A DNA stretch of 64,000 bases from the NCBI RefSeq assembly GCF_002113885.1, contig NW_018408783.1, positions 1,378,819 through 1,442,818 on the forward strand, given 5' to 3'. The notes below the pieces were generated by a model that searched no databases, had not been told where the DNA came from, and saw nothing but the letters and a program-made list of their open reading frames with translations. The DNA comes from Mizuhopecten yessoensis. Lineage: Eukaryota. The translations under genes were made by a program, and so were the position numbers. Of this stretch, positions 16,460 to 56,491 are shown in pieces. Within the stretch, counting starts at the first letter, position 1. The number at the start of each line of letters is the position of its first letter.

Positions 16460-16853
16460 AAGTTTGTTGTTGCAAGTATCATTTTACTTTTTATACTTTA
16501 GTAACTGATTTATGTTTTCTAACGCCTGTTTTGGGTGCCTGGTGTAGCGTATGTTGGTAGCCTTTTGAAGTTTGTTGTTGCGAGTATCATTTTACTTTTT
16601 ATACTTTAGTAACTGATTTATGTTTTCTAACGCCTGTTTTGGGTGCCTGGTGAAGCGTATGTTGGTAGCCTTTTGAAGTTTGTTGTTGCGAGTATCTTTT
16701 TACTTTCTATACTTTAGTAACTGATTTATGTTTTCTAACGCCTAATTTGGGTGCCTGGTGAAGCGTATGTTGGTAGCCTTTTGAAGTTTGTTGTTGCGAG
16801 TATCTTTTTACTTTTTTATAGTTTAGTAACTGATTTATGTTTTCTAACGCCTG
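16460..16853. repeat. 108-bp tandem repeat, ~3.6 copies
   Basis: GTTTGTTGTTGC starts at 16462, 16570, 16678 and 16786. Copy B has a single unit (~30850-30957). Confidence 0.92.
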
Positions 16854-18700
16854 CTTGGTCTCTGTAGCTTCTTTTGAAAGCCTCTTGTTCTCTGTAGCTT
16901 CTTTTTATAGCCTCTTAGTCTCTTTAGCTTCTTTTGATATCTGCTTGGTCTCTGTAGCTTCTTTTGATAGCCTCTTAGTCTCTCTGTAGTTTCTGTTGAT
17001 ATCCTCTTAGTCTCTGTAGCTTCTTTTGATAGCCTCTTGGCCTCTGTAGCTTCTTTTGATAGCCTGTTAGTCTCTGTAGCTTATTGTGATATTCTCTTAG
17101 TCTCTCTGTAGTTTCTTTTGATATCCTCTTAGTCTCTCTGTAGCTTCTTTTTATAGCCTCTTAGTCTCTTTAGCTTCTTTTGATATCTGCTTGGTCTCTG
17201 TAGCTTCTTTTGATAGCCTCTTAGTCTCTCTGTAGTTTCTGTTGATATCCTCTTAGTCTCTGTAGCTTCTTTTGATAGCCTCTTGGCCTCTGTAGCTTCT
17301 TTTGATAGCCTGTTAGTCTCGGTAGCTTATTGTGATATTCTCTTCGTCTCTCTTTAGTTTCTTTTGATAGCCCCTTAGTCTCTCTGAAGTTTCTTTTGAT
17401 AGCCTCTTAGTCTCTCTGTAGCTTCTGTTGATAACCTCTTAGTCTCTGTAGCTTCTTTTGATATCCTCTTGGTCTCTGTAGCTTCTTTTGATAGCCTCTT
17501 AGTCTCTGTAGCTTCTTTTGATATCCTATTGGTCTCTGTAGCTTCTTTTGATGGACTCTTAGCCTTTGTAGCTTCTTTTGATAGCCTCTTGGTCTCTCTG
17601 TAGTTTCGTTTGATTTTCTCTTAGTCTCTGTAGCTTCTTTTGATAGCCTCTTGGCCTCTGTAGCTTCTTTTGATAGCTTCTTAGTCTCTCTGTAGCTTCT
17701 GTTGATAACCTCTTAGTCTCTGTAGCTTATTGTGATATCCTCTTATTCTCTTTGTAGTTTCTTTTGATAGCCTCTTGGTCTCTCTGTAGCTTCTTTTGAT
17801 ATCCTCTTGGTCTCTGTAGCTTCTTTTGCTGGACTCTTAGCCTTTGTAGCTTCTTTTGATAGCCTCTTAGTCTCTCTGTAGTTTCGTTTGATTTTCTCTT
17901 AGTCTCTGTAGCTTCTTTTAATATCCTCTTGGCCTCTGTAGCTTCTTTTGATAGCTTCTTAGTCTTTCTGTAGCTTCTGTTGATAACCTTTTAGTCTCTG
18001 TAGTTTATTGTGATATCCTCTTATTCTCTCTGTAGTTTCTTTTGATAGCCCCTTAGTCTCACTGAAGTTTCTTTTGATAGCCTCTTAGTCTCTATGTAGC
18101 TTCTGTTGATAACCTCTTAGTCTCTGTAGCTTCTTTTGAAAGCCTCTTGGTCTCTCTGTAGCTTCTTTTGATATCCTCTTGGTCTCTGTAGCTTCTTTTG
18201 CTGGACTCTTAGCCTTTGTAGCTTCTTTTGATAGCCTCTTAGTCTCTCTGTAGCTTCTGTTGATAGCCTTTTAGTCTATGTAGCTTCTTTTGGTAGCCTC
18301 TTAGCCTCTGTAGCTTCTTTTGATGGCCTTTTAGTCTCTGTAGCTTATTGTGATATCCTCTTATTCTCTCTGTAGTTTCTTTTGATAACCCCTTAGTCTC
18401 ACTGAAGTTTCTTTTGATAGCCTCTTAATCTCTGTAGCTTCTTTTGGTAGCCCCTTAGTCTCTGTAGCTTGTTTTGATAGTCTCTTAGTCTCTGTAGCTT
18501 CTTTTGGTAGACTTTTAGTCTCGCTGTAGCTTATATTGATAGCCTTCTAGTCTCTGTAGCTTCTTTTTATAGCCTCTTAGTCTCTTTAGCTTCTTTTGAT
18601 ATCTGCTTGGTCTCTGTAGCTTCTTTTGATAGTCTCTTAGTCTCTGTAGATTCTTTCGATAGCCTCTTAGTCTCTGTAGCTTCTTTTGATAGGCTCCTTT
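16853..18700. repeat. 30/32-bp minisatellite (TAGCCTCTTAGTCTC[TC]TGTAGCTTCTTTTGA)
   Basis: Direct tandem repetition with variable CT insertions; paralogous array at 31070-32470. Confidence 0.95.
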
Positions 18701-29109: not shown

Positions 29110-31069
29110 AATAAAAAGTAGAACAGTAAACATGTAGACACATGAACATTTTAAAAGAAAAATAGGCAAACATGAGACAGGGAGGTACTTTAAATGGGTA
29201 AAACAAATGCCCTCATGCATCTTTAGAAGTGTTTAATCCAATTACGACATCACTGCGAGACATCTATTCGAACCATTACCTGTCAGAATAAAGCTCATGC
29301 GCCAAATGTATGAGGATTGCTTCGATGATTATTTAACCATAATAGCTTTTTTTTTGGTTATTACTGACTATAACTACATGCAGTATATCAAAGCTGCCTG
29401 TGTCTGTTGATAAATGGATTGATAGGTTTCTGATTTACAATATATTTTCCTTGGGGTAGATATATGTAATGAAATATATACATGACAATCTTTTCTGTTG
29501 CTACGGTGCTTGATAGAATACTGATATGTACCCCATTCAGACATCGGGTCGGTCAGTTTGGTTCAGTTCAGTTTTGTTTGATGAATTGAGCTTAGAGTCA
29601 TATCAACAGCTATGGTCAATTAAGTGAAGCACTTCCATGTGTGAAATGTATGCGGTGTAATGGGGGCATGTTACTGGTGTATATGTGAATGCCGATTTAA
29701 GAGTACTACCTTGTAAAAATACCATGCCTCAGATACGTATCACAAGCGTCAAAATAGTCATATTCTACTAACAACGAGTACATTAGTCAATATCGCTTTC
29801 AATATAAAGCTTACTTCAATTAATCCAATTAACAGAACCAATCACCACCCTTTCTTGGCCAAGTGCAGGGTTTTTAAGAAAGGCGTTAGGGATAAAACAG
29901 GTAATAGATAGAAAAGGACATATAAAAAAAACTTTGAGATTCGCAAACCAGTTTTATTATGGCCTCTGCTGTGTCACCAACGAGAAGGTTCAATTGCGAA
30001 TACATAATACTACAAGGGGGTTACTTTATAAATCGTCTTTTACGAATCATTCAGAGAATAAAACATGTTCGGTTTTTGCTTTGCTTTCCGGTAAGATCTT
30101 TGGAGGGGTACTGACAAACTTTCTCAAACCAGTCCCTATGCTAGTCCTATCCTGTCGTGTATCGTAGGATTTGCGAATCATTCGGAGAATAAAACATGTT
30201 CGGTTTTTGCTTTATTTGTGGTTGTTTTTTAAACATTATTTTATAAACCATACTTATTCTATGGTTTATGTTTTTCTCATTTTTTTATCACCTCCTACCA
30301 ATACTTGTTTTCTGTATTTTTATATTCTTCATATGTTTTGTTATAAATATATATATAGAAATCTGCCTATATGTAGACATGGACTTCAAACGAAGAAATG
30401 CAATTTACCAATTTAAATGCAATATCCCATTTACTTTTGTATGTAAATGTCAATAACATAATACGATAACATATTTCTGCATTCTCCGTCAGTATTACTG
30501 AATGGGTAGATATTTAAACTTGCAAAAGTCTTCAAACACAAATTAAAATATCCATTTACTCGTTAAGTAATCATGTATTCACTGATAAATTCACCTGTGA
30601 GTCAAACTTGAATTCATCGAGCAAATTCACTGAGAGACTTTGCTCTATCAAAAGACGTATTCTTCTTTAATTTATTCGTCATTTATTTATGATTAAATCT
30701 GTTATTAAAGCTAAATAATTACTTTTTATGTTATATGAATGCATGTATATCAATTTAACAAACGTCAATGAAAAACTCGCATAAACAAATGTCAAAACAA
30801 TTATTTCCAGTTTGTAAAACTCACTACTGTTACTTGCTGTTCACAGACATTTTGTTGTTGCGAGTACCTTTTTACTTTCTATACTTAAGTAACTGATTTA
30901 TGTTTTCTAACGCCTGTTTTGGGTGCCTGGTGTAGCGTATGTTGGTAGCCTTTTGACGTTTGTCGTAGCCTCCTTCAACCCAATCAGTATAAGCATTCTG
31001 TATATTATTTTGGCAGACTCACACTGCTCACTTTGGTAGCAACGTGAAGCCTTGTTGTTTGCCTCTGTA

Positions 31070-32470
31070 ACTTCTTTTGGTAGCCTCTTAGTCTCTGTAG
31101 ATTCTTTTGATAGCCCCTTAGTCTCTGTAGCTTCTTTTGCTAGCTCCTTAGTCTCTGTAGCTTCTTTTTATAGCCTCTTAGTCTCTGTAGATTCTTTTGA
31201 TAGCCCCTTAGTCACTGTAGATTCTTTTGATAACCACATAGTCTCTGTAGCTTTTTGTGATAGCCTCTTAGTCTCTGTATCTTCTTTTGATAGCCTCTTA
31301 GTCTCTGTAGATTCTTTTGATAGCCCCTTAGTCTCTGTAGCTTCTTTTGATATACTCTTTGATTCTGTAGCTTCTTTGATAGACTCTTATTATCTGTAAC
31401 TTCTTTTGATAGCCTCTTAGTCTCTGTAGCTTCTTTTGGTAGCCACCTTATTCTCTTTAACTTCTTTTGATAGCCTCCTAGTCTCTGTATCTTCTTTTGA
31501 TAACTCCTTACTCTCTGTAGCTTCTTTTGATAGCCTCTTAGTCGCTGTAGCTTCTTTTGATAGCCTCTTAGTCTCTGTAGCTTCTTTTGATAGCCCGTTA
31601 GTCTCTGTAGCTTCTTTTGATATACTCTTAGTCTCTGTATCTTCTTTTGGTAGCCCCTTACCCTCTGTAGCTTCTTTTGATAGCCTCTTAGTCTCTGTAG
31701 CTTCTTTTGATAGCCCCTTAGTCTCTGTATCTTCTTTTGATAGACTCTTAGTCTCTGTATCTTCTTTTGGTAGCCCCTTAGTCTCTGTAGCTTCTTTTGA
31801 TAGCTTCTTAGTCTCTGTATCTTCTTTTGATAGCCCCTTAGTCTCTGTAGCTTCTTTTGGTAGACTCTTAGTCTCTGTATCTTCTTTTGATAGCCCCTTA
31901 GTCTCTGTAGCTTCTTTTGATAGACTCTTAGTCTCTGTAGCTTCTTTTGATAGCCTCTTAGTCTCTGTATCTTCCTTTGGTAGCCCCTTAGTCTCTGTAG
32001 CTTCTTTTGATAGCCTCTTAGTCTCTGTAGCTTCTTTTGATAGCCCCTTAGTCTTTGTAGCTTCTTTTGATAGACTCTTAGTCTCTGTAGCTTCTTTTGA
32101 TAGCCTCTTAGTCTCTGTAGCTTCTTTTGATAGCCCCTTAGTCTCTGTAGCTTCTTTTGATAGACTCTTAGTCTCTGTAGCTTCTTTTGATAGCCTCTTA
32201 GTCTCTGTATCTTCTTTTGATAGCCCCTTAGTCTCTGTAGCTTCTTTTGATAGCCTCTTAGTCTCTGTAGCTTCTTTTGATAGCCCCTTAGTCTCTGTAG
32301 CTTCTTTTGATAGACTCTTAGTCTCTGTAGCTTCTTTTGATAGCCCCTTAGTCTCTGTAGCTTCTTTTGATATACTCTTTGATTCTTTAGCTTCTTTTGA
32401 TAGCCACCTTATTATCTTTAACTTCTTTTGATAGCCCCCTTAATCTCTGTTGCTTCTGTTGATAGCCTCT
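31070..32470. repeat. Homogeneous 30-bp minisatellite (TAGCC(T/C)CTTAGTCTCTGTAGCTTCTTTTGA)
   Basis: Strict 30-nt phase over most of 31441-32400; paralog of 16853-18700. Confidence 0.96.
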
Positions 32471-32748
32471 TGTAACTTATGTTAGCAACCTCATGAAGTT
32501 TGTATAATATGTATTGAAACGAGTGATTTCAGTTATGCTCTACTAATTTGTAGCTTAATTTAAATAAGTTGAGGCTCATTAATAGAGTCCCTTCAAGTTT
32601 TGTTGTGTCCTTAACCATTGTTATATATGGACGGCATGATGTCGTTTTTCCAGTTCAATATGTAGCTCTCTTACCTATAACATGCTGATATTAGAACTCA
32701 GATGATCTTGTGTAACCATCCTGCCAGATCGGTATTTTTCACATATAT

Positions 32749-39000: not shown

Positions 39001-39303
39001 TTAGGTTGATCGGCAACATTTTACTGTTTTAATTATTCCAATAATATATATTTAAAGTCCGCGTGTTAGTTATATTTTAATTGCATAATATTTATGTTTG
39101 TTTATATATTTGTTGTGGGCATAAGTGACGATAAGACTTAGTCGTATAACACACCATTAACACAATAAAACATATTACAACCCAAACACTACGTTAAAAT
39201 GAAGTCAAAATGTTGTTTATCTCCTTTTGCTAAAAGGTGAAAATATAAAAACAAAAATACATTCATATTAATTGCGAAACAATATCATCAAACGAATAGA
39301 TAT

Positions 39304-39479
39304 TGTAATGCGGATTTACCTCCTCCGGAAATCGGGGTCCGGTCCCCGGATTTGATGTTAGACGCGGAAGCAGGTTATCCTGTGTTCGTTGAGTTTTACC
39401 GCCATTAAAAGGTTGCACTGAAAACTCGGACGATCTTTGTGTTGTTATTGAAGAACACAGCCAGCTATCCGGCATAACA
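39304..39479 (+). repeat. 5' LTR (176 bp)
   Basis: TGTAATGCGG...GGCATAACA, imperfect terminal inverted repeat, internal ATTAAA (candidate polyA signal). Confidence 0.97.
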
Positions 39480-39481
39480 AG

Positions 39482-39499
39482 TGGTGTCAGAAGTGGGAT
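39482..39499 (+). promoter_or_regulatory. Primer-binding site complementary to the 3' end of tRNA-Leu
   Basis: TGGTGTCAGAAGTGGGAT, 2 nt after the LTR, is the reverse complement of ...ATCCCACTTCTGACACCA, the 3' end of metazoan tRNA-Leu(CAA/CAG). Confidence 0.9.
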
Positions 39500-39756
39500 T
39501 TTGCTTATACGCCCTGCAGGGAGTCCAAAACCCGTTTCTTTTTGTGTAATGTATTGCAATTCGTACCTCAAAGTGGACAGAGGTCTGCTACAGGTAATCG
39601 CGCTGCATTTTGTGTTGTGGGTTGTTACTCGTCATTTAAATGATTATTTTGTAATTTGATTACTATAACTCATTTATAACTTTCACAAAGTAAGAGCACA
39701 ATAACTAATTTACTTGGTTTGGGTAATTTGCTGTTTTGTGTGCCTATATTTAGCCT

Positions 39757-40650
39757 TTGGTCTTGTACTTTCGTTTTACATGTATTTTCGTATTGGTGTT
39801 CACTGCGAACACTGGAATTGCTTCCAAACGAATCGTTCACTGCGAACGGTCAAACATTATCTTTCAGAGGTCGGAGAAGGATCTCGTAGACTACCTTAAA
39901 TCACACAACGTGACAATACCACCTCACGAGGCTGATTTGACCCCCCTGCTAGTATCCGACAGCAAAGGAAAGCGCCTTGCAGTGGTACACAGGGGCAGTA
40001 ATCCAAAACTTCCGATACAGTTCTCATGTAAAGGTGGTGCAAACTCATCAACCCTAGTATCCCTACTAAAAGAACAAATTCCCATCCTCAAGCAGAAATT
40101 TGGTAAACCTGTTTATGTTTATTTCTGGGCTGGTACATGCGACATAACCTCAAAGCAAGGCTGTTATATAAACATTTCTGGTACCTGTGTTAACACTATA
40201 CACAAAATTATCAACTGCTACAAAAGAGCGAGGGACTACACAATAAAACAGGGGTGCAAAATTCAATTTATTGGAGTACCTGTTTATTCGGTTAGCCTTT
40301 ACAATGATATCCAAGGTCACCATAATCCGAGCAAGTTTCTAGAAACAGATGCTGAAGTTGCCAGCCAGGTACACTTCTTGAACTCTCAAATTGAACTTCT
40401 CAACACAGAACTTGGTACCACAACACTTAAATTCAATGCTGATCTTCGTGATTGTCGAAAAAAGGGAAAAGAGCGATATTTCATAGAATTATTGGAGGAC
40501 GGTCTCCACCCTGGGGAACTCTTGGCGAGGAAGTGGTTTAGGCGACTTGAATTAAATATTGTGAAAACTTGTTTTGTGGACCAGGACATTTTGGAAGTCC
40601 ACGTCGACCAACAGGAACTGTTACAGTTAGCATTTGAACAAAATGTGTGA
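39757..40650 (+). CDS. SGNH/GDSL hydrolase (esterase-like) accessory ORF of the Gypsy element; probably translated from a spliced mRNA (39549-39593 + 39868-40650, 275 aa)
   Basis: Stop-free 297-codon frame with blocks in SGNH order: LLVSDS (block I, Ser at 39961-39963), CKGG (II), WAGTCD (III, GxND-like), EDGLHP (V, DxxH at 40498-40509). The frame has no ATG. Confidence 0.82.
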   Translation: MVLYFRFTCIFVLVFTANTGIASKRIVHCERSNIIFQRSEKDLVDYLKSHNVTIPPHEADLTPLLVSDSKGKRLAVVHRGSNPKLPIQFSCKGGANSSTLVSLLKEQIPILKQKFGKPVYVYFWAGTCDITSKQGCYINISGTCVNTIHKIINCYKRARDYTIKQGCKIQFIGVPVYSVSLYNDIQGHHNPSKFLETDAEVASQVHFLNSQIELLNTELGTTTLKFNADLRDCRKKGKERYFIELLEDGLHPGELLARKWFRRLELNIVKTCFVDQDILEVHVDQQELLQLAFEQNV

Positions 40651-43600
40651 TAAAGAACAAGAAGTCACACCAGGGGAAGGAGAGTCTTCAGTTGACACTG
40701 CGTCAGCTGCGGCATATGATATGCTTCAATTCGTAATGAAAAGTTTTGATGAGCAGCGTGATACACAAATGAAGATGTTTCGGCAAACTATGGTGGAGTT
40801 TGAAGACGAAAAGAAACGAAGCTTCGAGGCACAAAGTGAAATGATGAAGTCCTTCATGCAAGAGACACGTCATGATATTCAAAATGCCATAGGACATCAA
40901 GCACCGCTTGCACAGAGTACATTTTCATCTATGGGTCCACAACAGGAATTTGGAAGGTCGACAGACAGAGGATCGTTTGGTGGTTTTGACGAAGAACTCC
41001 GGGTGATCCAGGATAGAGAACGCTCATATTCAAGTCCAAACTTAAATGGACAGAACTCTGCACTATCCAGTACCCCCTCATTGGAAAGACAGGATATGGG
41101 ACGTATGCTGAACAGACATCAAGGAAAGGGTCCTCAAACAAAACTTCCAGTGTTTGAGGGAAAGGAGGATATAGAGGTTTTTATTGTTCCCTTTGAACGG
41201 TTAGCAGAGCGTTATAACTGGACAGACAATGAGAAAGTGGACAGACTCTACGAATGTCTAAAAGGAAGGGCCATGTGGTACATCTGCTCCTTACCAAGGG
41301 AGATGAGAAGAGATTACAGGAATCTAAAGGATAGTCTGATCAAGCGGTTCGGACGAAGAGACCCACCCACAACAGCGAGATCAAAATTACACGAAGTAAG
41401 GCAACGCAGCCTAAGTAATGACGAATTTGGGGAAGAGGTTTGGCGCCTAGTTACCCTTGCTTATCCTAATGTAGATCTCGACTTGCAAGATCAATTGGCT
41501 GCAGAGGCATTCCTCAAGGGGTACAAGAACCCCAAGGTATCTTATGATGTGTTGAACAAGAAACCAAAAACTATCAATGAGGCTATTGAAATGGTTACTT
41601 CACAAGAACATAACTTCAAAGCCACCATCGGTAGGGAGAAAGAGATACGAGACAAGGCTCGGCGCGTTTCATGGGCTGATGGGGCTGGTGTAAAAAATGT
41701 CTCCGATGACGAAGAAGCGTTGAATACACAGCGTGTTCAACTGCCAAACACTGCCTTAGAGTCGGACAACCTCAGTAAATTAGATGTTCGGATGAAACAG
41801 CTTGAGGATCTTGTTCGGAATAGCTCGCTAGAGTGTCGCGCAAGATTCGACCAGTTAGGGAACGAACGCCAAAGTGGGTTTAGCAAGGAAGGAAAGGAAT
41901 GTTACAGATGTGGTGGTAAGGGACACTTCCAAAGAGATTGCAGCTCTAGGAGATCAAGATCGCCCACACCACCGAACAGTCCCCGTTCTCGCTCACCACA
42001 GCATGATGTTAAGATCACCCGGACCAATAGGACAGAGAAAAGCATTATCGTCCCAGTAACGGTCAATGGAACAACAACTGAAGCGGTTATTGATACTGGG
42101 GCCGACGCCACAGTCATCTCTGAGAAATGGGCAAATGAAATAAATTTGCTGTATGCTAAGCCAAAGAAAGAAATTCGTCTAATGACAGCTGAGGATGGTG
42201 CAGAGATGACAGGATTAGGTGTAGTCACTGCGACTCTCCAAATTGGGGAAGAGGTGAGGGAATTACCAGTTGTGATAGCTCCTATCAGAGACAACATACT
42301 GGTGGGCATTGATCTACTCCAATCTGTACAGGCCATTATCCATACTGGAGAAAAGAACCTGGAAGTCAACGGAAAAGTAATCCCAGGACACTCTCAGTTG
42401 AACAGATCTGGGACTGCTATTGCCAGGAGTATAGTTAGAGTACATGCAGATGTTGTGGTGCCACCAGGAAGTGAGAAAATAATCATCGGAAGATTGGAGA
42501 CACCATCAGACACTTCTCAAGCAATACTGGAGGCATTCAATCATCAAAGCGGAATGCGAGTTGGGTCATGTCTTGTCTCTATGAATCAAACTATTCCTGT
42601 GAGAGTTCTCAACCTGAAGGATAGCGAGATTAAACTCACAAATGGCACATTTCTAGGAAAAGTTGAGGAAGCTGACCTAGCTTGGGACCCAAATATGAGC
42701 AGGGAGCCTTCCGTAAACACCAGTGTCGAGCCAGAACATTTACAAGAGGCCCCTGGGACAAACGGAGAGGTTCCGTTGCATGTACAGGATATTTTTGAAG
42801 AGTCCTCAAAAGGACTGTCATCAAATCAAAAAGAGGATCTCTGTATGCTGCTGAATGACTTTCCTGATATATTTGCTAAGGATGACTACGACCTAGGCAG
42901 ATTCAGCGGAGTCAGACATAAGATTGACACAGGTGAAAACAAACCTATACGTCAACCCGCAAGAAGGACACCATTGGGTTTTCAAGCTGAGGAGGACGCC
43001 CATCTACAAAAACTTCTTGACACTGGTGTTGTCATTCCATCTAGTTCTGAATGGGCATCACCGGTAGTACTTGTTCGCAAGAAAGATGGTGGTGTGCGTT
43101 GGTGCATAGACTATCGAAAGGTGAATGAGGTCAGTGTAAAAGATGCTTACCCACTTCCAAAAATTGAAGAGTGCCTTGATACGCTTAGTGGTGCGACTCT
43201 ATTTTCCACCGTAGACTTAATGAGTGGCTACCACCAAATTGAAGTTGATGAGATGGACAGATCAAAGACCGCCTTTGTCACCAAACAGGGGCTCTTTGAG
43301 TACACCAGAATGCCTTTTGGCTTATCCAACTCTCCCTCAACTTTCCAGCGTGCAATGGAGCTCGTACTTAGAGGGTTTCAGTGGGTCATACTTCTTATTT
43401 ATCTGGACGATGTGATAGTGGCATCCAGGTCTTTTGAAGAACATATGCAACATCTGCGTCAGGTTTTCTCCCGGATCCGTGAACACGGTCTGAAGCTGAA
43501 AGCCAAGAAGTGCCGTTTGTTTCGTGAGGAAGTCCTCTTCCTGGGACACATTATTAACGGTGATGGAATCTCCACCAATCCAAAGTTGGTAGATGACGTC

Positions 43601-46006
43601 CTGAATTGGCCTGTGCCAAGCAACTGTAGGGAGCTTCAGTCTTTTCTAGGACTTACCAACTACTACAGACGGTTCGTTCAAAATTATGCAGAGATCGCTC
43701 TGCCACTGCATGACCTCACACGGAAGGAGGTAAAATTTGTATGGGAAGACCGTCAGTGTGAGGCATTCGAGGCCCTGAAGAAGGCAATTACCACTGCTCC
43801 GATATTGTCATACCCGTTGGAGAATTGCAAATTTGTCATAGATACGGATGCTTCTAACAGGAGTATAGGCGCCGTTCTTTCGCAAGTCCAAGATGGGGAG
43901 GAGAAAGTTGTTGCATATGCAAGTAGAAGACTGACCCCTGCACAGGAGAAATATTGTGTGACACGACGCGAACTTCTTGCAGTTGTTGCTTTCTGCCAGC
44001 ATTTCAAACATTATCTTCTTGGCCGGAGGTTCTTATTACGCACAGACCATAGCAGTTTGTCATGGCTTTTCCGATTCAAGTCACCACAGGGACAGCTGGC
44101 GAGATGGCTAGAGGAGGTCAGTCAATACTCTTTTGACATCGAACACCGTGCTGGGAAGCTGCATGTGAACGCTGATGCCATGTCACGGATTCCGGATCAC
44201 GATTCGTGCCCTTGCTACTTCGCGGGTGCCACCGTTGAAACTCTACCCTGTGGAGGATGTATGTACTGTGCAAAACTACAGACTGCGTGGGAAAGATTCG
44301 AGGAGGATGTTGACGATATTGTGCCTATAGCTGTTCGTTCGGCGGAGGTAACTGCTGTCGAAAAACACTCTGAGACCGGAGAGGACTCTAATACGAAGGA
44401 CGATATTCCTCAATGTAACTGGCTACAGACCAAAAGTCCGATGGAACTTCACGAAGAACAGATGCAAGATGAGGATCTAAAACAACTGTATTCATGTGTG
44501 GCCAACAGCGAGACAGTTCCTCTGGGTGAGGCGCAAGCAAGAAGTCCTGCTCTGCGGAAGTATCTACTAACCCTTCAGCAGTTCAAACTGATACACGATG
44601 TTCTCTACTACCAGTGGGAGGCAAATGGACAGGAGTCACTGCGACTCCTGGTTCCATTCCAGATGAGAAAAGAGATCATGCAGGCATGTCATGAAGCTGT
44701 TTACTCCGGTCATCAAGGGGAGAAGAGAACTCTGGAACGAGTGAAGAAGGACTTTCACTGGCACAACATGTCGATGGATGTGAGCATATTTGTTCGGAAA
44801 TGTCATGTATGTGCCGCTGAAAAGAAGAGTAGTAGAACTATGAGAGCACCTCTTCAGACCTACATCTGCGGAGCGCCAATGGACAGGATACAATTGGATG
44901 TCGTGGGGCCTTTTCCTATTAGTGATGCTGGGAACAAATACATACTTGTCATCATCGACCAGTTCACGAAGTGGGTCGAGGCTTACCCAATCACACAACA
45001 GGACAGTAACACGACAGCAAAAAAACTGGTCCTGGAGTTCATCTCTAGATTTGGCGTACCCCTGGAGATCCACACGGATCAAGGACGAAACTTCCAAAGC
45101 GCCCTGTTCAAGGAAGTATGCCGGTTACTCGGAATCGCACAAACCAGGACTACGCCCTATCACCCTTCATCTAATGGTCAGGTTGAGCGGTTTAACCGCA
45201 CGCTGTTGCAGATGATCAGGTGTTATCTAGATCATGGCCAGGCGCATTGGGATGAGAACATTCCCCTTCTTCTGTCTGCTTATCGAAGTACGCCACACCC
45301 TGCGACAGGATTTACACCAAACCTGTTGATGCTGGGTAGGGAGGTCCATTCTCCTCCCGAGCTGATCTACATGGATCCGGATATTTCGCGTTCCTCTGAT
45401 GACGCACCCACCTACCTCGACCGGATGTTAGAGGGTATGCACATTACAGAGGAATTAGCTAGGAAAACATTGAGGGCTTCAAAGGTACATCAGAAAAAAG
45501 TATATGATCTACGGGCTAGGGGAAGAGAGTACCACGTCGGGGATCTTGTATACGTGAAGAACCAATCACGATCTGTTGGACAATCTCCGAAACTCCAATC
45601 TGTTTGGAATGGTCCTTTTGTGATCACCAAGAAATTTGGTCCGGTCGTGTATGAGGTCCGTGGCCGCAAGAAGGCTTCAGTTCTTCACCATGACCGGCTA
45701 AAACAATATTTGTCTGAGGTCATCCCGGCCTGGGTTACCAAGATAAAGCATGATCTTGGTACCTCCTCTCTCCCAACGATTGCTGAGGAAGACCATCTTC
45801 CAACCATGGATAAGAAGTTCGGGACAGAGGAAAACCACCACGAGTCGCAGAACAGCCAACAATCGCTGAAAGCCAGTTTACCAGAGGAAGAGCCAAAGAC
45901 ACCTGTGCCAACTGGGATGTGTTCACAGCGAACCATCTCAGATGAACCATCCCGGTCCTCGCGTTACGGCCGGGCATATAAGCAGCCTACCAAGCTTGAC
46001 CTTTAG
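40643..46006 (+). CDS. Gag-Pol polyprotein (1787 aa, single uninterrupted frame)
   Basis: Capsid-like LPVFEG..F...FE...W; CCHC knuckle CYRCGGKGHFQRDC; protease AVIDTGA; RT (SPVVLV.KK, MPFGL, YLDD); RNase H (DTDAS...ELLA...TDH); integrase HHCC + D,D,E (LDVVGP, TDQGRNF, GQVERFN); GPF motif. No chromodomain or env. Confidence 0.97.
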   Translation: MCDKEQEVTPGEGESSVDTASAAAYDMLQFVMKSFDEQRDTQMKMFRQTMVEFEDEKKRSFEAQSEMMKSFMQETRHDIQNAIGHQAPLAQSTFSSMGPQQEFGRSTDRGSFGGFDEELRVIQDRERSYSSPNLNGQNSALSSTPSLERQDMGRMLNRHQGKGPQTKLPVFEGKEDIEVFIVPFERLAERYNWTDNEKVDRLYECLKGRAMWYICSLPREMRRDYRNLKDSLIKRFGRRDPPTTARSKLHEVRQRSLSNDEFGEEVWRLVTLAYPNVDLDLQDQLAAEAFLKGYKNPKVSYDVLNKKPKTINEAIEMVTSQEHNFKATIGREKEIRDKARRVSWADGAGVKNVSDDEEALNTQRVQLPNTALESDNLSKLDVRMKQLEDLVRNSSLECRARFDQLGNERQSGFSKEGKECYRCGGKGHFQRDCSSRRSRSPTPPNSPRSRSPQHDVKITRTNRTEKSIIVPVTVNGTTTEAVIDTGADATVISEKWANEINLLYAKPKKEIRLMTAEDGAEMTGLGVVTATLQIGEEVRELPVVIAPIRDNILVGIDLLQSVQAIIHTGEKNLEVNGKVIPGHSQLNRSGTAIARSIVRVHADVVVPPGSEKIIIGRLETPSDTSQAILEAFNHQSGMRVGSCLVSMNQTIPVRVLNLKDSEIKLTNGTFLGKVEEADLAWDPNMSREPSVNTSVEPEHLQEAPGTNGEVPLHVQDIFEESSKGLSSNQKEDLCMLLNDFPDIFAKDDYDLGRFSGVRHKIDTGENKPIRQPARRTPLGFQAEEDAHLQKLLDTGVVIPSSSEWASPVVLVRKKDGGVRWCIDYRKVNEVSVKDAYPLPKIEECLDTLSGATLFSTVDLMSGYHQIEVDEMDRSKTAFVTKQGLFEYTRMPFGLSNSPSTFQRAMELVLRGFQWVILLIYLDDVIVASRSFEEHMQHLRQVFSRIREHGLKLKAKKCRLFREEVLFLGHIINGDGISTNPKLVDDVLNWPVPSNCRELQSFLGLTNYYRRFVQNYAEIALPLHDLTRKEVKFVWEDRQCEAFEALKKAITTAPILSYPLENCKFVIDTDASNRSIGAVLSQVQDGEEKVVAYASRRLTPAQEKYCVTRRELLAVVAFCQHFKHYLLGRRFLLRTDHSSLSWLFRFKSPQGQLARWLEEVSQYSFDIEHRAGKLHVNADAMSRIPDHDSCPCYFAGATVETLPCGGCMYCAKLQTAWERFEEDVDDIVPIAVRSAEVTAVEKHSETGEDSNTKDDIPQCNWLQTKSPMELHEEQMQDEDLKQLYSCVANSETVPLGEAQARSPALRKYLLTLQQFKLIHDVLYYQWEANGQESLRLLVPFQMRKEIMQACHEAVYSGHQGEKRTLERVKKDFHWHNMSMDVSIFVRKCHVCAAEKKSSRTMRAPLQTYICGAPMDRIQLDVVGPFPISDAGNKYILVIIDQFTKWVEAYPITQQDSNTTAKKLVLEFISRFGVPLEIHTDQGRNFQSALFKEVCRLLGIAQTRTTPYHPSSNGQVERFNRTLLQMIRCYLDHGQAHWDENIPLLLSAYRSTPHPATGFTPNLLMLGREVHSPPELIYMDPDISRSSDDAPTYLDRMLEGMHITEELARKTLRASKVHQKKVYDLRARGREYHVGDLVYVKNQSRSVGQSPKLQSVWNGPFVITKKFGPVVYEVRGRKKASVLHHDRLKQYLSEVIPAWVTKIKHDLGTSSLPTIAEEDHLPTMDKKFGTEENHHESQNSQQSLKASLPEEEPKTPVPTGMCSQRTISDEPSRSSRYGRAYKQPTKLDL

Positions 46007-46024
46007 CAGGAGCTAAAGGAGCCT

Positions 46025-46036
46025 GGAAGGGGGTGG
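46025..46036 (+). promoter_or_regulatory. Polypurine tract
   Basis: GGAAGGGGGTGG immediately 5' of the 3' LTR. Confidence 0.88.
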
Positions 46037-46212
46037 TGTAATGCGGATTTACCTCCTCCGGAAATCGGGGTCCGGTCCCCGGATTTGATGTTAGACGCGG
46101 AAGCAGGTTATCCGGTGTTCGTTGAGTTTTACCGCCATTAAAAGGTTGCACTGAAAACTCGGACGATCTTTGTGTTGTTATTGAAGAACACAGCCAGCCA
46201 TCCGGCATAACA
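46037..46212 (+). repeat. 3' LTR (176 bp)
   Basis: Identical to the 5' LTR except for two substitutions (TCCTGTG/TCCGGTG and GCTATCC/GCCATCC). Confidence 0.97.
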
Positions 46213-46795
46213 ATATGAGAAACCTGTAGAAAAACAAACATTTATATAATAGTCAGTAACGATATACAAATGAGAGCTATCCTCTGTTTAGTAGAATCAT
46301 TCAATTCTATTAAAGGTACGGTGTCGTTAACTATCGCTCTTTTCTCTTATCAGCAGGGTAAAACTGGCATTCCTTTTTTTTTGTTACACAGCACAAGTTA
46401 TTACCTTCGTGTATACCACACTCAGGGTGCCAATGATATAAAACACAAAGGACTTAAATTGTATTTTCTTACGTGCCGTAAAGAATTGGATGATATATCT
46501 TATTTCTCGCATACCCCAATGGGTCCCTTTACATTGACGAACTTCCTTGTCAACCTTTGACACGCTTCCTCTGTTTCACGATTACTTGTTTTAGTTAACA
46601 CTACTCATAACAAAATTGTCATTAGAGATCTTAATAATAATAATAAAAATACGTATATTGTGTAAACATTACCTCTGGTTGCTGCAGTTGTGTTAACGTA
46701 TGCTCTCATGACATCCTGTGAAACCGCTTATGCATCATATTAACGTAAACATAAGAAGCAGTCGGGAACAAGGCTTTGCACCATGACATGAATAT

Positions 46796-49365: not shown

Positions 49366-49841
49366 TATAGGATCCCACATATTTTTCAAATTTACCATTT
49401 TTGGAAACAGTCAGGACCATAGGGTATGAAACCAAAATGGGAAGTGGCTGGCTCCAAGGCTTGGGCTGCTAGGTCAAGTCTTCTACCGGTACTGAAGATG
49501 GAGATTCCTGCAAAAAAAGGCAGGAAAATTGAACCAGTTTCAAAATGTAAACTTGAATATCTTAATAAATATTATACTTAGACTTATGGTTTTGAGTTTT
49601 TATTAAAGTACAGGTACTGTTCTACCCAGAAATATAAACAACAAACATTTTGTCTGAAGATCAGGGGAGATAACTCAATTTTGAGACCCATACCCCCTTA
49701 ATTTTGGACTTTTTGTAAAAAATTGAAGACACCAGCAATTATTTAGAGAAAAGAGTCAAAAACAGACACAAAAGTAAAGACTAATAACTGTACAAACAGT
49801 ACAACACCACAATGATAGGATTACATAATGTTTACATAACA

Positions 49842-50419
49842 NNNNNNNNNNNNNNNNNNNNNNNNNNNNNNNNNNNNNNNNNNNNNNNNNNNNNNNNNNN
49901 NNNNNNNNNNNNNNNNNNNNNNNNNNNNNNNNNNNNNNNNNNNNNNNNNNNNNNNNNNNNNNNNNNNNNNNNNNNNNNNNNNNNNNNNNNNNNNNNNNNN
50001 NNNNNNNNNNNNNNNNNNNNNNNNNNNNNNNNNNNNNNNNNNNNNNNNNNNNNNNNNNNNNNNNNNNNNNNNNNNNNNNNNNNNNNNNNNNNNNNNNNNN
50101 NNNNNNNNNNNNNNNNNNNNNNNNNNNNNNNNNNNNNNNNNNNNNNNNNNNNNNNNNNNNNNNNNNNNNNNNNNNNNNNNNNNNNNNNNNNNNNNNNNNN
50201 NNNNNNNNNNNNNNNNNNNNNNNNNNNNNNNNNNNNNNNNNNNNNNNNNNNNNNNNNNNNNNNNNNNNNNNNNNNNNNNNNNNNNNNNNNNNNNNNNNNN
50301 NNNNNNNNNNNNNNNNNNNNNNNNNNNNNNNNNNNNNNNNNNNNNNNNNNNNNNNNNNNNNNNNNNNNNNNNNNNNNNNNNNNNNNNNNNNNNNNNNNNN
50401 NNNNNNNNNNNNNNNNNNN
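49842..50419. other. Assembly gap (578 N)
   Basis: Run of N; hides the 5' part of the transposase gene. Confidence 1.
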
Positions 50420-51628
50420 GCACCGAGGAAACCCGCCAAACAAAGTAGACCTGATGGTGGATGCCACCTACAACAACCCAATTTATTCTGGTGCGGGGAA
50501 GACTCCGTTCCAGCCAGCGACACAAGTTATGTTCAGCACTATAGAACACAACACCAAGGACCAGTATGTGGTGGACCTTGTCACCAAAAACAAACTATGC
50601 AATATATGGCCACCCTGTGAAAGTGAACATACCTCACACTGTAAAGGTAACTTACCTCTGGCCTCATCAATTGGTAATGAACAGGCGTACTGCTACGAAA
50701 GTCTGGAGAACCCCAAAAGAGACGGCCTGGAGGTGGACAAGCTTGTTACCGACTCAGATACAGGTGCATTCAAGGCTGCTGAAAAGAGATACAAAAGTGG
50801 TGCATCATGTACAAAGCCAACACATAACCTGGACCCTATTCATCTAACAAGGAATTTCAGAAAAACATTTCAAAGTGTGTGAAACTTGAGGAAATAATGC
50901 CGGGATCCACTAAGAAAGAGCGACAAACAATTAAAAAAAGATTTACTTGTGACCTAGCCGCTCGGTGTCAGGCAGAGCTGTATCACCTGTACGACAGACA
51001 TTGTGGGAGTCTCATTCCCTTACAACGTGCTGCTCATGGTGTAAAGGGGGCCATCGTGAAGTGTTACCAAGGTGTACACTGTGAGTGCAGGACCAAATCA
51101 CTAGTGTATGCAGGAAAGGAGAGAAATAACTGGCTAACAGACAACATATATTTACCAAGTGATTTCAAGGTCAGCGGTGGAGAGGCAACTGTGTCAAAAA
51201 TTCTGATGGAGAAAGTTGATGCCCGTCTCGGTGACTCCGTGTTGGAAAAGACCTTGTGGAACCTGACGACCCAAAAGGTAGAATCTGTGAACAGACGGCT
51301 GATGCGGTCTCTCCCATCAAGTGTGAACTTTACTCGTAACTTTTCAGGGAGAGCTCATAGGGCGGTGTATTCTGTGAACCATGGACCGGGAACTGCCATT
51401 AAAGAACTGTGCAGTGGGGTTGGGTCTCCAATCACTGCTGGAAGCTCTGTGTCCAAGGACCTAGATAAAGAACAAAAAAGACATTTGTACAATAAAGCAC
51501 GAAGTCAATCATTGCGGTGTAAAATTCAGAAGAGAAATAAGAGACACAAAATATTCAAATTACATGACTGTAAAATTGATGAAGAAATTTATGTGAAAGA
51601 CAGAGTTATGATTGAGAAAAAGAAATAA
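50420..51628 (+). pseudogene. Kolobok-type DDD/E transposase, C-terminal part, frameshifted
   Basis: Candidate catalytic residues in LMVDATYN, LVTDSDT and TQKVESVN; Cys/His clusters. The frame shifts at a TG run (AGTGTGTGAAA, ~50874-50884) between ORFs 50420-50882 and 50879-51628. Confidence 0.75.
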
Positions 51629-54384: not shown

Positions 54385-56491
54385 ATGGCGAAAAGCAAAG
54401 ACGATTACAAAGTCAACGGATCTGAGTGCGAGTCAGTTCCATTTAATGAAAGTACTAATGAGGATGGAAAAGAAAAATGCCAGACGAAGGCCCCTATCAC
54501 AGAATATCGATCATTTCTACATGAGATTCTTAATAACGATGCCACTAGATTCAAGACCTTGCTGAGTGTATGCGCCGCTTCAGGTTTCTGCATACTGGTT
54601 TGTTATATTTTCTTTGTTTGTATGGTTGTATTATATTAAAGATGATGATTTCATGTAGTGATTACAATTTCCCGTTTCGTATTCTGGTCAACACTAGCCC
54701 ATATCTTTTCGAGTTTTCCTTTGGGCAACAGCAGATATTCTTAAATAAGTATATTTCATGATAGCCGTACCAGATTGAATGTCAGCTACGGTAGGTTTAG
54801 TGAGATACATCTTTATGAGTGTGTTTGATTCATATTCTACGAAACTGAGTTTTTAAATGACAACGTCTTTATATTTCCAGGGATGGACAAAAGGCCAGTT
54901 CGGACCTGCATTCTTAGATATTCTGCTCATCGGTGGCACAAGCCTTGAAGAAGGATCTATGTTCATGACGTCATATTTTATAGGAAGGGTGCTGGGTTCT
55001 ATTCTTGGAGGAGCTATTTATTCCAGACTTAACAGATACCTTATTCTTGTAGTCGCCATGACCACTAATAGTGTCATGTTTGCCGTCATACCATGGTGTA
55101 CAGTATATGAACTCATGATTGCTGCGCATGTTCTACATGGTATTTCCGGTGGAGTGATGTCTGTTTGTAAGTTACATTATCCTGGTTTTATTGTACATTT
55201 GCTTTAATTGTTTCTCTATTTATTTATTCACGTATACAGTATCATCTCTAATGCCTTTCTGCAGAACAGTGTGAATTTAAGCAAATATATCCAAATGTAA
55301 TATATATATTAAGGATATTTTCTTTTCATGTTGATTACAATATAATTTTACCGTAATCTGAATTACTGACCATTGAAATACTGTACGTCAAGGTTTCATC
55401 AGTATCGTTGATGCATGTATTTTTATGTACAGAAAAAGTTTATTTAATATGTATTTAAATAGGTTATTTATTCATGTCAATGGAACACTTTATGTATCAT
55501 TTCAGCTTTAATATCGATAGCAGCGTCAATCTGGGGAACTTCGGCGAGGGGTAGGGTGTATATGAACATCTTCTACGCTGCTTTTGCTATCTCTGGATTC
55601 CTCTCGCCGATTGTGACGTCACCGTTCTTGATTCCAACAACGACAGATGTCACTAGATACAATACATCTTGGAATATATCTAACAATATAGTCGATGAAG
55701 TCAATGGAAACGGCTCAAACATCCAATCTGTTCCGCAGTTAAATGCATTACATACAGAATCACCCAAATCCAGACTTTATATAGGTTTTTCAATTTCAGC
55801 TGGATTTGCATTCTTGGTCACAATTCCATTTGTTGTGATATTATTCAAATCGCCACAACAATCAGAAAATAAAGTCAGGATCGACGAGTTACATTTCATT
55901 GGCGATCTTCCAATATTTATAAAAATACTTCAATTTGTAAATGTTGGAATATTTTCAGCTGTGTTCGTTGCAATGGATTTTTCATTTAGCGGCTTTCTGA
56001 CAGTGTTTTGTGTTCAACATTTGCAATGGACAAAGACAGCCGGTTCCATGTTAACATCCGTGGCATTTTTTGCTTTGCTTTTCGGTAGGATCTTTGGAGC
56101 GGTACTGACAAACTTCCTCAAACCAGTCCCTATGCTATTGCTTTCCATCATATCGTGTACCGTAGGATTTGTTGGACTTTCAGTTAGCGCCATTTTTCTG
56201 GCTGATGTAGGAATATGGATATCTGTATGTGTTATAGGAACACCTTTGGGTGTTGTTTGGCCAAGTTTTCTGAGTTGGATCAACGATAATTTAATTCCAC
56301 TTCGAGGTAAAGTGACTGCATACCTAATGATAACTGCCTTTGTTGGGGCGCTCCTGAGTCCGATGTTGTTCGGATATATGATGGAAGAGGTATCGCCAAT
56401 ATGGTTCTGTTTTTTAAGCTTAGGGAAGGCTATAGTTACTATCATCAACGTGACATTGTTTTCTCTGTATACGAGGTTCTTGCACAAATGA
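54385..56491 (+). CDS. MFS transporter, MFSD4/NaGLT1 (sodium-dependent glucose transporter 1)-like, copy C, intact, 494 aa
   Basis: Exons 54385-54597, 54881-55166 and 55506-56491 splice GT-AG in frame without stops. About 12 hydrophobic segments; GQFGPAFLDI and GSILGGAIYSRLNR (motif-A-like). An acceptor at 54366-54367 implies an upstream exon. Family assignment from motif recognition; substrate unproven. Confidence 0.85.

Follow-up and report, generated by a model that had tools for sequence, protein, structure and literature searches.

The sequence analysed here, a 64,000-nt stretch of the Mizuhopecten yessoensis genome (contig NW_018408783.1; hereafter the window), harbours, at positions 39304-46212, an LTR retrotransposon of the Ty3/Gypsy type that is young and structurally intact. 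The first gene of this element, located ahead of gag, codes for a predicted SGNH-fold protein. It belongs to one retroelement-borne family, whose members precede gag in a whole Gypsy lineage and, in bivalve non-LTR elements, lie upstream of the PHD and APE-RT ORFs. Sequence comparisons support the view that the gene is a conserved and selected 5' accessory gene of the whole Gypsy lineage and not neutral cargo. Taken as a whole, the explanation that we prefer (an intact Gypsy element, an SGNH esterase of the shared family as its first cistron, splicing of the leader and a lipid- or membrane-directed accessory role) is considered probable, with some reserve.

Organisation of the element

All features are given in window coordinates and lie on the forward strand. 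The element is complete and is bounded by two LTRs of 176 nt with TG...CA ends (5' LTR 39304-39479, 3' LTR 46037-46212), which were located by repeat search and blastn and are flanked by the short target-site duplication ATAT (39300-39303 and 46213-46216). A blastn comparison of both LTRs yielded 2 mismatches over 176 nt, the value on which a young age of the element had originally been predicted. The primer-binding site (PBS, 39482-39499) starts with TGG 2 nt past the 5' LTR, and a polypurine tract is found at 46025-46036; both were read in the sequence, as was the target-site duplication. The PBS is shared by the window element (W) and the Gypsy elements L004, L006, L007 and L008, and its first 14 nt are present at the equivalent place in these four and in L010.

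The gag-pol ORF (40643-46006) comprises 1787 codons without interruption. Pfam domains occur in the order typical of Ty3/Gypsy elements. The gag region, from a capsid-like part to the CCHC zinc knuckle (41258-41944; Retrotrans_gag weak, zf-CCHC), is followed by the aspartic protease (42050-42322), the reverse transcriptase (RT) with RNase H (43073-44128, also matched in the PDB) and the integrase with zinc-binding, core and C-terminal SH3-like domains (44651-45703). The best PDB match of gag-pol is Ty3 Gag-Pol (E 3.5e-122; solved structures 7q5b and 4ol8). Ty3 of yeast (Metaviridae) has the same PR-RT-RH-IN order, but lacks a gene between PBS and gag. Within the 64-kb window, no second copy of the element was detected by blastn and no tRNA gene was found for comparison with the PBS. 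Rfam gave no match in 39200-46300.

The esterase reading frame

As originally predicted, a stop-free frame lies between PBS and gag; it extends from 39754 to the stop codon at 40648-40650, which the gag-pol ATG overlaps by 8 nt in the +1 frame. The start assigned to it in the prediction, a TTG at 39757, is an artefact of ORF listing, since the frame is devoid of Met codons. The main exon (39868-40650) consists of 260 codons plus the stop codon. Residues are numbered from the Arg at 39868, and homology searches and fold prediction were performed with the main exon alone, without joining the putative mini-exon described below.

The AlphaFold (AF2) model of the main exon (pLDDT 84, pTM 0.81) displays a three-layer alpha/beta/alpha fold with parallel strands. 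In a Foldseek search against the PDB, 129 hits reached E ≤ 1e-3, and all natural proteins in the part listed are SGNH/GDSL-type enzymes. Many GDSL lipases and acetylesterases were matched with a Foldseek probability of 1.00 and TM scores (target length) of up to 0.73, and the neighbours include O-acetylesterases, acetylhydrolases and sialate O-acetylesterases. The SGNH fold, for which a structure prediction had been suggested as a check, is thus borne out.

The four sequence blocks are present in the predicted order and were compared among 138 relatives, which are only 25-50% identical. Block I (S-D-S, residues 30-32, 39955-39963) follows the model strand 25-30 and contains the predicted nucleophile Ser32; Asp31, Ser32 and Lys33 are each at least 90% conserved. 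The glycine of block II (Gly57, 40036-40038) follows strand 51-54, and block V (D-G-L-H-P, 40498-40512) provides Asp211 and His214; all three residues are again conserved in at least 90% of the relatives. The Ser/Asp/His triad is apparently complete. Block III (40132-40143) reads G-T-C-D instead of the canonical G-x-N-D, with Cys91 at the place of the Asn; its Gly, Thr and Cys each reach a conservation of at least 90%. The Asn-to-Cys exchange, which according to the original prediction may alter activity, is not a local mutation: Cys is the normal state in at least 90% of the 138 relatives. Judged by these residues, the protein is best filed as an SGNH fold with an atypical S-G-C-H set and not as a canonical SGNH enzyme. 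Catalysis is uncertain, as the side chain that completes the canonical oxyanion hole is missing. Asn172 is invariant.

Sequence searches yielded weaker signals than the structural comparison. Pfam (Lipase_GDSL, Lipase_GDSL_2) gave no hit on the window protein apart from a sub-threshold chance match, and among the 138 relatives weak matches to Lipase_GDSL in 25 and to Lipase_GDSL_2 in 12 (best E 3.1e-5). Against PDB sequences, a profile of 15 sequences (A1) found nothing at E ≤ 10. A profile of 138 sequences (A3) found eight matches, all above E 0.03, the best being a weak one in which block V aligns with its counterpart in an SGNH-derived chain. Matches of A3 to ulilysin and a bacteriocin look like chance.

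The protein is basic (pI 8.5-9.6). Its main exon contains neither a hydrophobic span nor a signal peptide (maximum 19-residue hydropathy 0.79), and Pfam detects no PHD finger in it. The model has about 24 residues ahead of the first strand, too few for an N-terminal coiled-coil domain. The first cistron is predicted to encode a small (about 275 aa including the putative mini-exon), basic, soluble SGNH-fold protein.

Relatives in bivalve non-LTR elements

The esterase family comprises 977 cluster representatives at E ≤ 1e-3. PHD/APE-RT non-LTR elements of Mytilus carry members of the family at their 5' end, and one protein (P0063) is an esterase-PHD fusion. Comparison of the window esterase with the esterase ORFs that precede the PHD and APE-RT ORFs of bivalve LINEs revealed full-length homology (hhalign probability 100, E 4.5e-58, 234 columns). 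The gene is hence not a private capture of this Gypsy element, but part of a large retroelement-borne family that also occurs in LINEs. Esterase and PHD domains were reportedly found in CR1/L2-type non-LTR retrotransposons by Kapitonov and Jurka in 2003.

Compared to the esterases of CR1/L2-type LINEs, the window protein has the same SGNH fold and is likewise encoded 5'-terminally in a retroelement, before the polymerase gene. The host differs: it is an LTR/Gypsy element, which comes with a gag gene of its own. The ORF1p esterase of ZfL2-1 (PDB 4c1b) is hydrolytic and binds acidic phospholipids via its surface charge; its active-site residues are not needed for liposome binding, and an Asn (N195) is reported for it (PMC3905857). 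The window protein is basic like the ZfL2-1-type esterase, but stands alone, carries Cys in place of N195 and has no coiled coil. Neither profile A1 nor A3 matched 4c1b or any solved esterase among PDB sequences at E ≤ 10, and 4c1b is not among the 50 Foldseek matches listed of the 129. According to work cited in a preprint, L2 retrotransposition is independent of esterase activity (10.64898/2026.01.13.699120), so that the function is not settled even for the LINE precedent.

Distribution and constraint in the Gypsy lineage

The esterase ORF precedes gag in 11 diverged Gypsy elements from several bivalves (W, L001, L002/3, L004-L009, L014 and L015) and is open in all of them. L002 and L003 are 99.9% identical, hence uninformative as a pair, and were counted as one. 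All Gypsy loci that were read have the esterase upstream of gag. Apart from a single stand-alone copy (L011), the relatives with a readable neighbourhood reside in retroelements. A metagenome scan for relatives yielded one locus and a scan of IMG/VR none.

Between diverged elements, the identity of the esterase ORF (ORF1) tracks that of RT. Its dN values are 0.44-0.47, compared to 0.25-0.48 for gag and PR; synonymous sites are saturated, which precludes dN/dS, and dN and identity ranks were used instead. Two scallop copies of the element show 8 differences in ~450 non-coding sites (LTR, intron) versus 0 in 768 coding sites.

These values speak against a passenger gene, i.e. a host esterase that was captured once and is decaying neutrally. 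Such an origin has nothing in its favour except that extra genes 5' of gag are rare in general. It conflicts with the open ORFs of the 11 elements, the co-divergence with RT, the unchanged coding sites and the retroelement context of the readable relatives other than L011, and is considered highly improbable. The 5' accessory gene of a whole lineage put forward in the original prediction is instead what the data favour.

Leader splicing and translation

The first ATG downstream of the LTR opens a putative exon 1 (39549-39593), which consists of the ATG and 14 further codons and ends in phase 0 at a GT donor. It is followed by a putative leader intron of 274 nt (39594-39867, GT...AG) with a pyrimidine tract before the AG. 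The basis for the intron is a gene-prediction model and sequence comparison: P0001, an NCBI model of a second copy, starts with the same 15 residues and continues directly with those encoded from 39868 onwards, and the acceptor is common to W, L001, L002/L003 and L006. In these elements the AG directly precedes a conserved Arg codon, which varies synonymously (AGG, CGT, CGG, CGA), while the acceptor is kept and an in-frame start is absent. The AG belongs to an in-frame stop in L001 and L006. Pyrimidine tract and AG are thus found at the same codon boundary in four elements with ~50% protein identity, and a candidate scan detected an in-phase ATG-plus-GT mini-exon in each of these leaders. The mini-exon peptide is not conserved among the relatives, in which donor and mini-exon could not be aligned. 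Together, the model and the comparison indicate that the 45-nt ATG mini-exon would be spliced over the 274-nt intron to 39868. The segment 39757-39867, which the original prediction had included in the coding sequence, is most likely intron, and the ATG missing from the ORF apparently comes from the mini-exon. Two other gene structures were rejected. The C-terminal exon of P0001 is an artefact of an assembly gap, and a frameshift fusion of ORF1 with gag was dismissed, as the overlap is just 8 nt and stops and gaps separate both ORFs in relatives.

ATG triplets are depleted in ORF1 (49 observed versus 116 expected, 7.9 versus 22.6 per kb) and the Met content of the esterase family is 0.36%, although some out-of-frame ATGs persist. 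We propose that in the sub-lineage of the window element the ORF has lost its own ATG and would be translated from a leader-spliced RNA, in which 39549-39593 is joined to 39868. Unspliced RNA could then not give rise to the esterase and would serve gag-pol expression and as genome. The ATG-poor ORF and the overlap of its stop codon with the gag-pol ATG may give ribosomes access to gag, through leaky scanning or re-initiation.

A conserved stem-loop is present twice in the leader, at 39795-39813 (copy a, 7-bp stem, loop ACUGC) and 39832-39850 (copy b), and a third time at the 3' end of pol (45918-45936, loop ACAGC). Copies at this 3' end also occur in L006, L014 and L015, and the stem-loop of leader and 3' end covaries. 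Together, the intronic and 3'-terminal stem-loops would mark the unspliced RNA. In retroviruses, the major donor is located downstream of the PBS and the packaging signal lies in the intron. The arrangement in the window would be similar, with a predicted donor about 95 nt past the PBS, an acceptor just before the accessory ORF and conserved stem-loops confined to unspliced RNA. The parallel is one of analogy, and it would differ from retroviral leader splicing in that the intron is only 274 nt long and removes no gene, and that the spliced RNA retains gag-pol.

Alternatively, the NCBI intron could be a prediction artefact, and the ORF of this sub-lineage could be translated from unspliced RNA via a non-AUG start or not be expressed. 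The wrong 3' exon that P0001 owes to the assembly gap, the unconserved mini-exon peptide and an intron derived from prediction and comparison are compatible with this. However, in L001 and L006 the in-frame stop just before the Arg codon bars ribosomes that come from upstream on unspliced RNA. The exact placement of pyrimidine tract and AG in four such different elements, the intact and constrained ORF in all four and the mini-exon on offer in each leader further argue for splicing, and we regard its absence as unlikely.

A broader evolutionary scenario can be outlined, which we offer tentatively and rate slightly below an even chance. A bivalve Gypsy lineage and CR1-like LINEs of bivalves would have exchanged an esterase module, which the Gypsy lineage made its first cistron, ahead of gag. 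One sub-lineage would then have evolved leader splicing of a retrovirus-like kind, in which only the unspliced RNA contains the covarying stem-loops and the esterase mRNA is separated from the gag-pol/genomic RNA. The atypical Ser/His/Asp-plus-Cys site would define a retroelement-specific branch of SGNH proteins.

Comparison with the GDSL ORF of rotifer elements

Vesta LTR retrotransposons and Athena/Terminon elements of bdelloid rotifers carry a GDSL esterase/lipase ORF3 downstream of pol, with invariant S, G and N residues reported intact (PMC5408684). The idea of a GDSL ORF in an LTR element is therefore not new. As far as the literature searched shows, the 5' position, the splice and the LINE link are new. 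Like the window ORF, ORF3 of Vesta is an SGNH/GDSL accessory ORF of an LTR retrotransposon without membrane span, and in both cases one module is common to different retroelement classes. The published description sets ORF3 apart by its location 3' of pol, compared to a location 5' of gag and a Cys at the N position in the window ORF. The dependence of one sub-lineage on a putative spliced leader exon is a further difference.

Possible function

Our reading of the function of the window protein is drawn from its sequence, the model and the analogy to LINEs. The esterase would do for the Gypsy lineage what the ORF1 esterase is proposed to do for CR1/L2-type LINEs. It may act as a charge-driven lipid- or membrane-directed, possibly deacylating, factor for RNP assembly or trafficking.

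Among the alternatives, a pseudo-enzyme fares best, though we consider it unlikely. Here the SGNH fold would be kept as a lipid-, ligand- or protein-binding scaffold and the Cys in place of the oxyanion Asn would go along with a loss of ester hydrolysis. The replacement of Asn by Cys91 in at least 90% of the family fits this assumption, as do the liposome binding of ZfL2-1 without need of active-site residues (PMC3905857) and the esterase-independent transposition cited in the preprint mentioned above. On the other hand, the at least 90% conservation of Ser32, Gly57, Asp211 and His214 at 25-50% identity can hardly be accounted for unless the site performs chemistry. In addition, two of the three donors of the SGNH oxyanion hole are main-chain amides (PMC10792757), so that activity could survive the loss of the Asn side chain.

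Still less probable is a role in counter-defence or host manipulation, in which the esterase would not act on membranes but strip acyl or acetyl groups from a host molecule that restricts retroelements. The retention of the module by two mechanistically unrelated retroelement classes fits a host-directed better than a particle-directed role, the esterase was counted as an always separate small protein, and O-acetylesterases and acetylhydrolases are among its structural neighbours. However, no substrate can be inferred, and the basic surface charge agrees equally well with the lipid-binding precedent. A substitute for env, i.e. a secreted or surface receptor-destroying esterase enabling the spread between cells that the original prediction named as one possibility, has sialate O-acetylesterases among the structural neighbours in its favour, but is hardly credible for a protein whose main exon lacks a signal peptide and membrane span and whose 15-residue mini-exon peptide is not hydrophobic.

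Significance

The role of retroelement esterases has been open since their discovery in CR1/L2 LINEs. In the present case, the same esterase family serves two element classes that differ in their particle (Gag versus ORF1p) and in their integration mechanism. The occurrence in both classes narrows the possible role, which must be independent of RNA packaging or mode of insertion. The Gypsy context offers a natural comparison of related elements with an ATG-type and a splice-dependent esterase, and the invariant Cys at the oxyanion position poses a structural question that can be addressed with the isolated protein. Furthermore, about a thousand unnamed proteins of 240-270 aa from bivalves and metagenomes can be labelled as retroelement esterases, including those on contigs wrongly binned into symbiont genomes.

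Element structure

The esterase gene (ORF1) is part of a Ty3/Gypsy LTR retrotransposon at 39304-46212. Its LTRs (39304-39479 and 46037-46212, 176 nt each, TG..CA) form a single direct repeat pair that encloses a 6.9-kb unit, flanked by a 4-bp target duplication (ATAT). A TGG-initiated primer-binding site (PBS, 39482-39499) lies 2 bases past the 5' LTR and a purine tract (46025-46036) directly 5' of the 3' LTR. The gag-pol ORF runs without interruption from the ATG at 40643 to the stop at 46006 (1787 codons). Pfam domains follow the Ty3/Gypsy order: capsid-like region, CCHC knuckle, aspartic protease, reverse transcriptase (RT), RNase H and three-domain integrase. Among solved structures, gag-pol matches Ty3 Gag-Pol best (E 3.5e-122). 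Based on the LTRs, the PBS, the purine tract and the unbroken gag-pol, the element is therefore complete. The LTRs differ at 2 of 176 sites; judged by this identity the element is young, as the original prediction of a young Gypsy element had stated. No further copy was found within the window. The window holds 578 N bases, none of them inside the element.

Other features of the window include a satellite array with a 40-nt unit (1-1987) and two arrays of one common 30-nt unit (16849-18696 and 31063-32471), 12 kb apart. A 331-aa ORF (31436-32431) sits within the second of these arrays, and its Pfam matches look spurious. Two forward-strand ORFs (13394-14077 and 55556-56488), perhaps paralogous genes or exons, are similar to Major Facilitator Superfamily transporters over the C-terminal half of the latter. 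Also observed were a Tc1/mariner-type DDE_3 transposase remnant (14461-15066, reverse strand) and a Mutator-like transposase ORF (49812-50879, forward strand).

Fold and active-site residues

The open esterase frame spans 39754-40650. Searches and fold prediction used 39868-40647 alone, with the predicted exons unjoined; residues are numbered from the Arg codon at 39868. The ORF was not recognised by Pfam, and profile searches of the esterase family against PDB sequences were blank or marginal. A 99%-identical homologue is an NCBI protein of Mizuhopecten yessoensis, and homologues with 42-54% identity were found in Pinctada imbricata, sequencing-run assemblies and metagenomes. With the homologue profile, 977 cluster representatives were retrieved at E ≤ 1e-3, of which 415 also passed E ≤ 1e-10; almost all members of the set are 230-270 aa long.

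The AlphaFold model of the main exon, based on an input alignment of 15 sequences, was confident (pLDDT 84, pTM 0.81) and yielded 129 Foldseek matches at E ≤ 1e-3. Among the matches listed were GDSL lipases, sialate and xylan acetylesterases, PAF acetylhydrolase and thioesterase I. Apart from such SGNH/GDSL-type enzymes, only designed scaffolds of the same fold were listed. The motifs are placed in the model as the fold expects, with S-D-S past strand 1, Gly past strand 2, G-T-C-D past strand 3 and D-G-L-H-P preceding the last long helix. In an alignment of 138 sequences spanning 25-50% identity, Asp31, Ser32, Lys33, Gly57, Gly89, Thr90, Cys91, Asp211, Gly212, His214 and Pro215 are each at least 90% conserved and Asn172 is invariant. 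A weak Pfam Lipase_GDSL match was obtained for 25 of the 138. Taken together, fold matches, motif placement and residue conservation argue that the predicted SGNH fold and the Ser/Asp/His set are real, in agreement with the SGNH blocks and triad first read from the sequence.

Canonical SGNH enzymes use two main-chain amides as oxyanion-hole donors and the Asn side chain as the third (PMC10792757). The Cys that had been read as an Asn-to-Cys change in block III is present, but its conservation among the relatives indicates the normal state of the family rather than a mutation of the window copy. With a pI of 8.5 (relatives 7.7-9.6) the product is basic, and no hydrophobic span was found in it. 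Residues 240-260 (40585-40647) form a short acidic C-terminal helix past a low-confidence linker in the model. This helix, whose pattern D-x-Q-E-aromatic/L-L-x-F is conserved across the Gypsy-linked group nearest to the window element (15-sequence alignment), may be a docking motif; most relatives of about 240 aa, LINE-linked ones included, stop short of it.

Position and constraint in related elements

An esterase homologue was found directly 5' of gag or gag-pol in every readable LTR locus (L001, L002/L003, L004, L005 (=L013), L006, L007, L008, L009, L014 and L015), as expected from the original prediction. The PBS start is common to the window element, L004, L006, L007 and L008. Between the ORF1 stop and the gag ATG there is either an overlap of 8 to 26 nt or a gap of at most about 120 nt. 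Identities of ORF1 and RT to the window element drop in parallel (ORF1/RT 0.54/0.75, 0.52/0.75, 0.50/0.75, 0.44/0.71, 0.39/0.68 and 0.27/0.56). For the nearest three relatives, ORF1 dN is 0.44-0.47, near the values for gag and protease, with synonymous sites saturated. Between the two scallop copies, 4 LTR sites differ, the putative intron has 3 differing sites and 1 indel, and the 45 + 723 coding sites compared are all identical. This absence of coding changes and the parallel identities speak against a one-off, neutrally decaying ORF, and on sequence grounds the 5' esterase is a lineage trait under selection.

Gag-pol is unbroken in L001 and in the matched parts of L004, L005 and L008; one frame change each was found in L002 and L009, two in L006, and one together with two stops in L007. 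ORF1 is open in all loci except L009, where its match is split into two overlapping parts, suggestive of a frame change. L007 carries a 2.46-kb repeat of LTR, leader, ORF1 and gag start (1563-4019 and 8774-11229; 7.2 kb apart, 99.5% identity), indicating either tandem elements with a common LTR or a wrap-around assembly. L005/L013, L014, L015 and the protein P0168 come from retrotransposon contigs, evidently animal, that were deposited within bacterial symbiont genome bins (Sedimenticola sp.; Candidatus Thiodiazotropha), probably host contamination.

Start codon and putative leader intron

The listed esterase frame contains no Met codon. The TTG at 39757 was dropped as a start, being merely a convention of the ORF lister; the gene model starts at 39549. 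P0001, the NCBI gene-model protein of the second scallop copy, opens with 15 residues encoded at 39549-39593, followed by the residues encoded from 39868. The leader DNA accordingly has an ATG and 14 further codons up to a GT donor; the putative intron is 274 nt long and closes with a pyrimidine tract and AG. In the second copy (L010), ORF1 is cut off by an assembly gap a little short of its end. The odd C-terminus of its model (LOC110448060) was ruled out as true coding sequence because the predictor bridged this gap; the last three residues and the 6.3-kb span are artefacts, and the first intron is the informative part.

In the window element, L001, L002/L003 and L006 (Pinctada), whose esterase proteins are about 50% identical, coding conservation starts exactly at the Arg codon. 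This codon varies synonymously (AGG, CGG, CGA, CGT) and is directly preceded by pyrimidines and AG; in L001 and L006 an in-frame stop includes the acceptor AG. No in-frame ATG precedes the catalytic Ser in any of these members, whereas an ATG occupies the very position of the Arg codon in the more distant members L004, L007, L008, L014 and L015, as it does in most of the 138. From this distribution, the window sub-lineage seems to have given up its start codon and gained a splice acceptor instead. Scored with a generic 8-nt splice-donor consensus, an in-phase ATG-plus-GT mini-exon is available in each leader, the peptides being unlike one another. Leader splicing probably provides the esterase ATG.

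ATG depletion and stem-loop

Over eight loci, ORF1 contains 49 ATGs compared to 116 expected from position-specific shuffles. The density is 7.9 per kb, about one third of that in gag-pol (22.6 per kb), and the deficit falls in the reading frame and the +1 frame. In the esterase family Met accounts for 0.36% of residues, and half of the proteins lack an internal Met. The leaders are likewise ATG-poor, and the residual ATGs in the window ORF1 start ORFs of 1-39 codons. Such scarcity would be expected where ribosomes must traverse ORF1 to reach gag.

Copies of the 13-nt core GTTCACTGCGAAC lie in two stem-loops of the putative intron (39795-39813 and 39832-39850) and, differing by one base, in a third at the pol 3' end (45918-45936), giving 3 matches compared to 0.05 expected. 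The predicted fold is a 6-7-bp stem with a 5-nt loop (ACUGC or ACAGC). The stem-loop recurs in leaders and 3' ends of L001, L002, L004, L006, L014 and L015, one Gypsy sub-lineage; each leader has 1-3 copies, and the 3' end of pol or the 3' UTR carries the motif as well. Over 13 instances, 87.9% of cells are paired, compared to 71.5% in shuffles, and 5 of 7 stem pairs show changes on both sides, including three outer pairs outside the search pattern. It was missing from L005, L007, L008, L009 and the LINE loci, and Rfam gave no match. Since both leader copies sit inside the putative intron, they would tag unspliced RNA only; a role in packaging, export or dimerisation is conjectural.

Relationship to known esterases of retrotransposons

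Esterase relatives also occur in LINEs. In L012 (Mytilus coruscus) the order is esterase ORF, PHD-finger ORF, APE and RT; the protein P0063 (M. edulis) is an esterase-PHD fusion, and downstream of P0040 come a 1442-aa ORF, faintly matched by PHD, and an APE-RT ORF. Judged by profile comparison, the LINE esterases are homologous to the window esterase: LINE-group and Gypsy-group profiles aligned over 234 columns (probability 100, E 4.5e-58), with motifs matching one to one. Rough neighbour-joining placed the window's Gypsy group and the LINE-linked proteins in separate clusters, with the Gypsy protein of L008 standing apart. Esterase together with PHD has been described for ORF1 of CR1-like elements, according to the title of Kapitonov and Jurka 2003 (via PMC5408684).

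The novelty first proposed holds in part. GDSL esterase ORFs have already been published for LTR retrotransposons of bdelloid rotifers (PMC5408684; also PMC5718144, PMC6431247), but the placement 5' of gag was without description in the literature searched. The rotifer ORF is ORF3, 3' of pol, retains the S, G and N residues and is common to LTR and Penelope-like elements (PMC5408684), whereas the window esterase lies 5' of gag, has Cys at the N position and belongs to a family common to Gypsy elements and LINEs. Full-text literature searches yielded neither an esterase 5' of gag in Gypsy, nor the Cys variant, nor a splice-supplied start, nor a LINE-Gypsy shared esterase in molluscs; each may have been catalogued earlier in Repbase or Dfam. 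A survey of mollusc LTR elements contains no mention of esterases (PMC6238403).

Proposed function

L2 transposition is reportedly independent of esterase activity, according to work cited in a preprint (10.64898/2026.01.13.699120). The window esterase may therefore be a pseudo-enzyme, or its role may be host-directed. In the working proposed here, unspliced RNA might give gag-pol by scanning across the ATG-poor sequence, and spliced RNA, besides providing the esterase, might also yield gag via re-initiation at the overlapping ATG. The esterase itself could act in the manner of its LINE counterpart, for which hydrolysis of short esters and charge-driven surface binding to acidic phospholipids have been described (PMC3905857).
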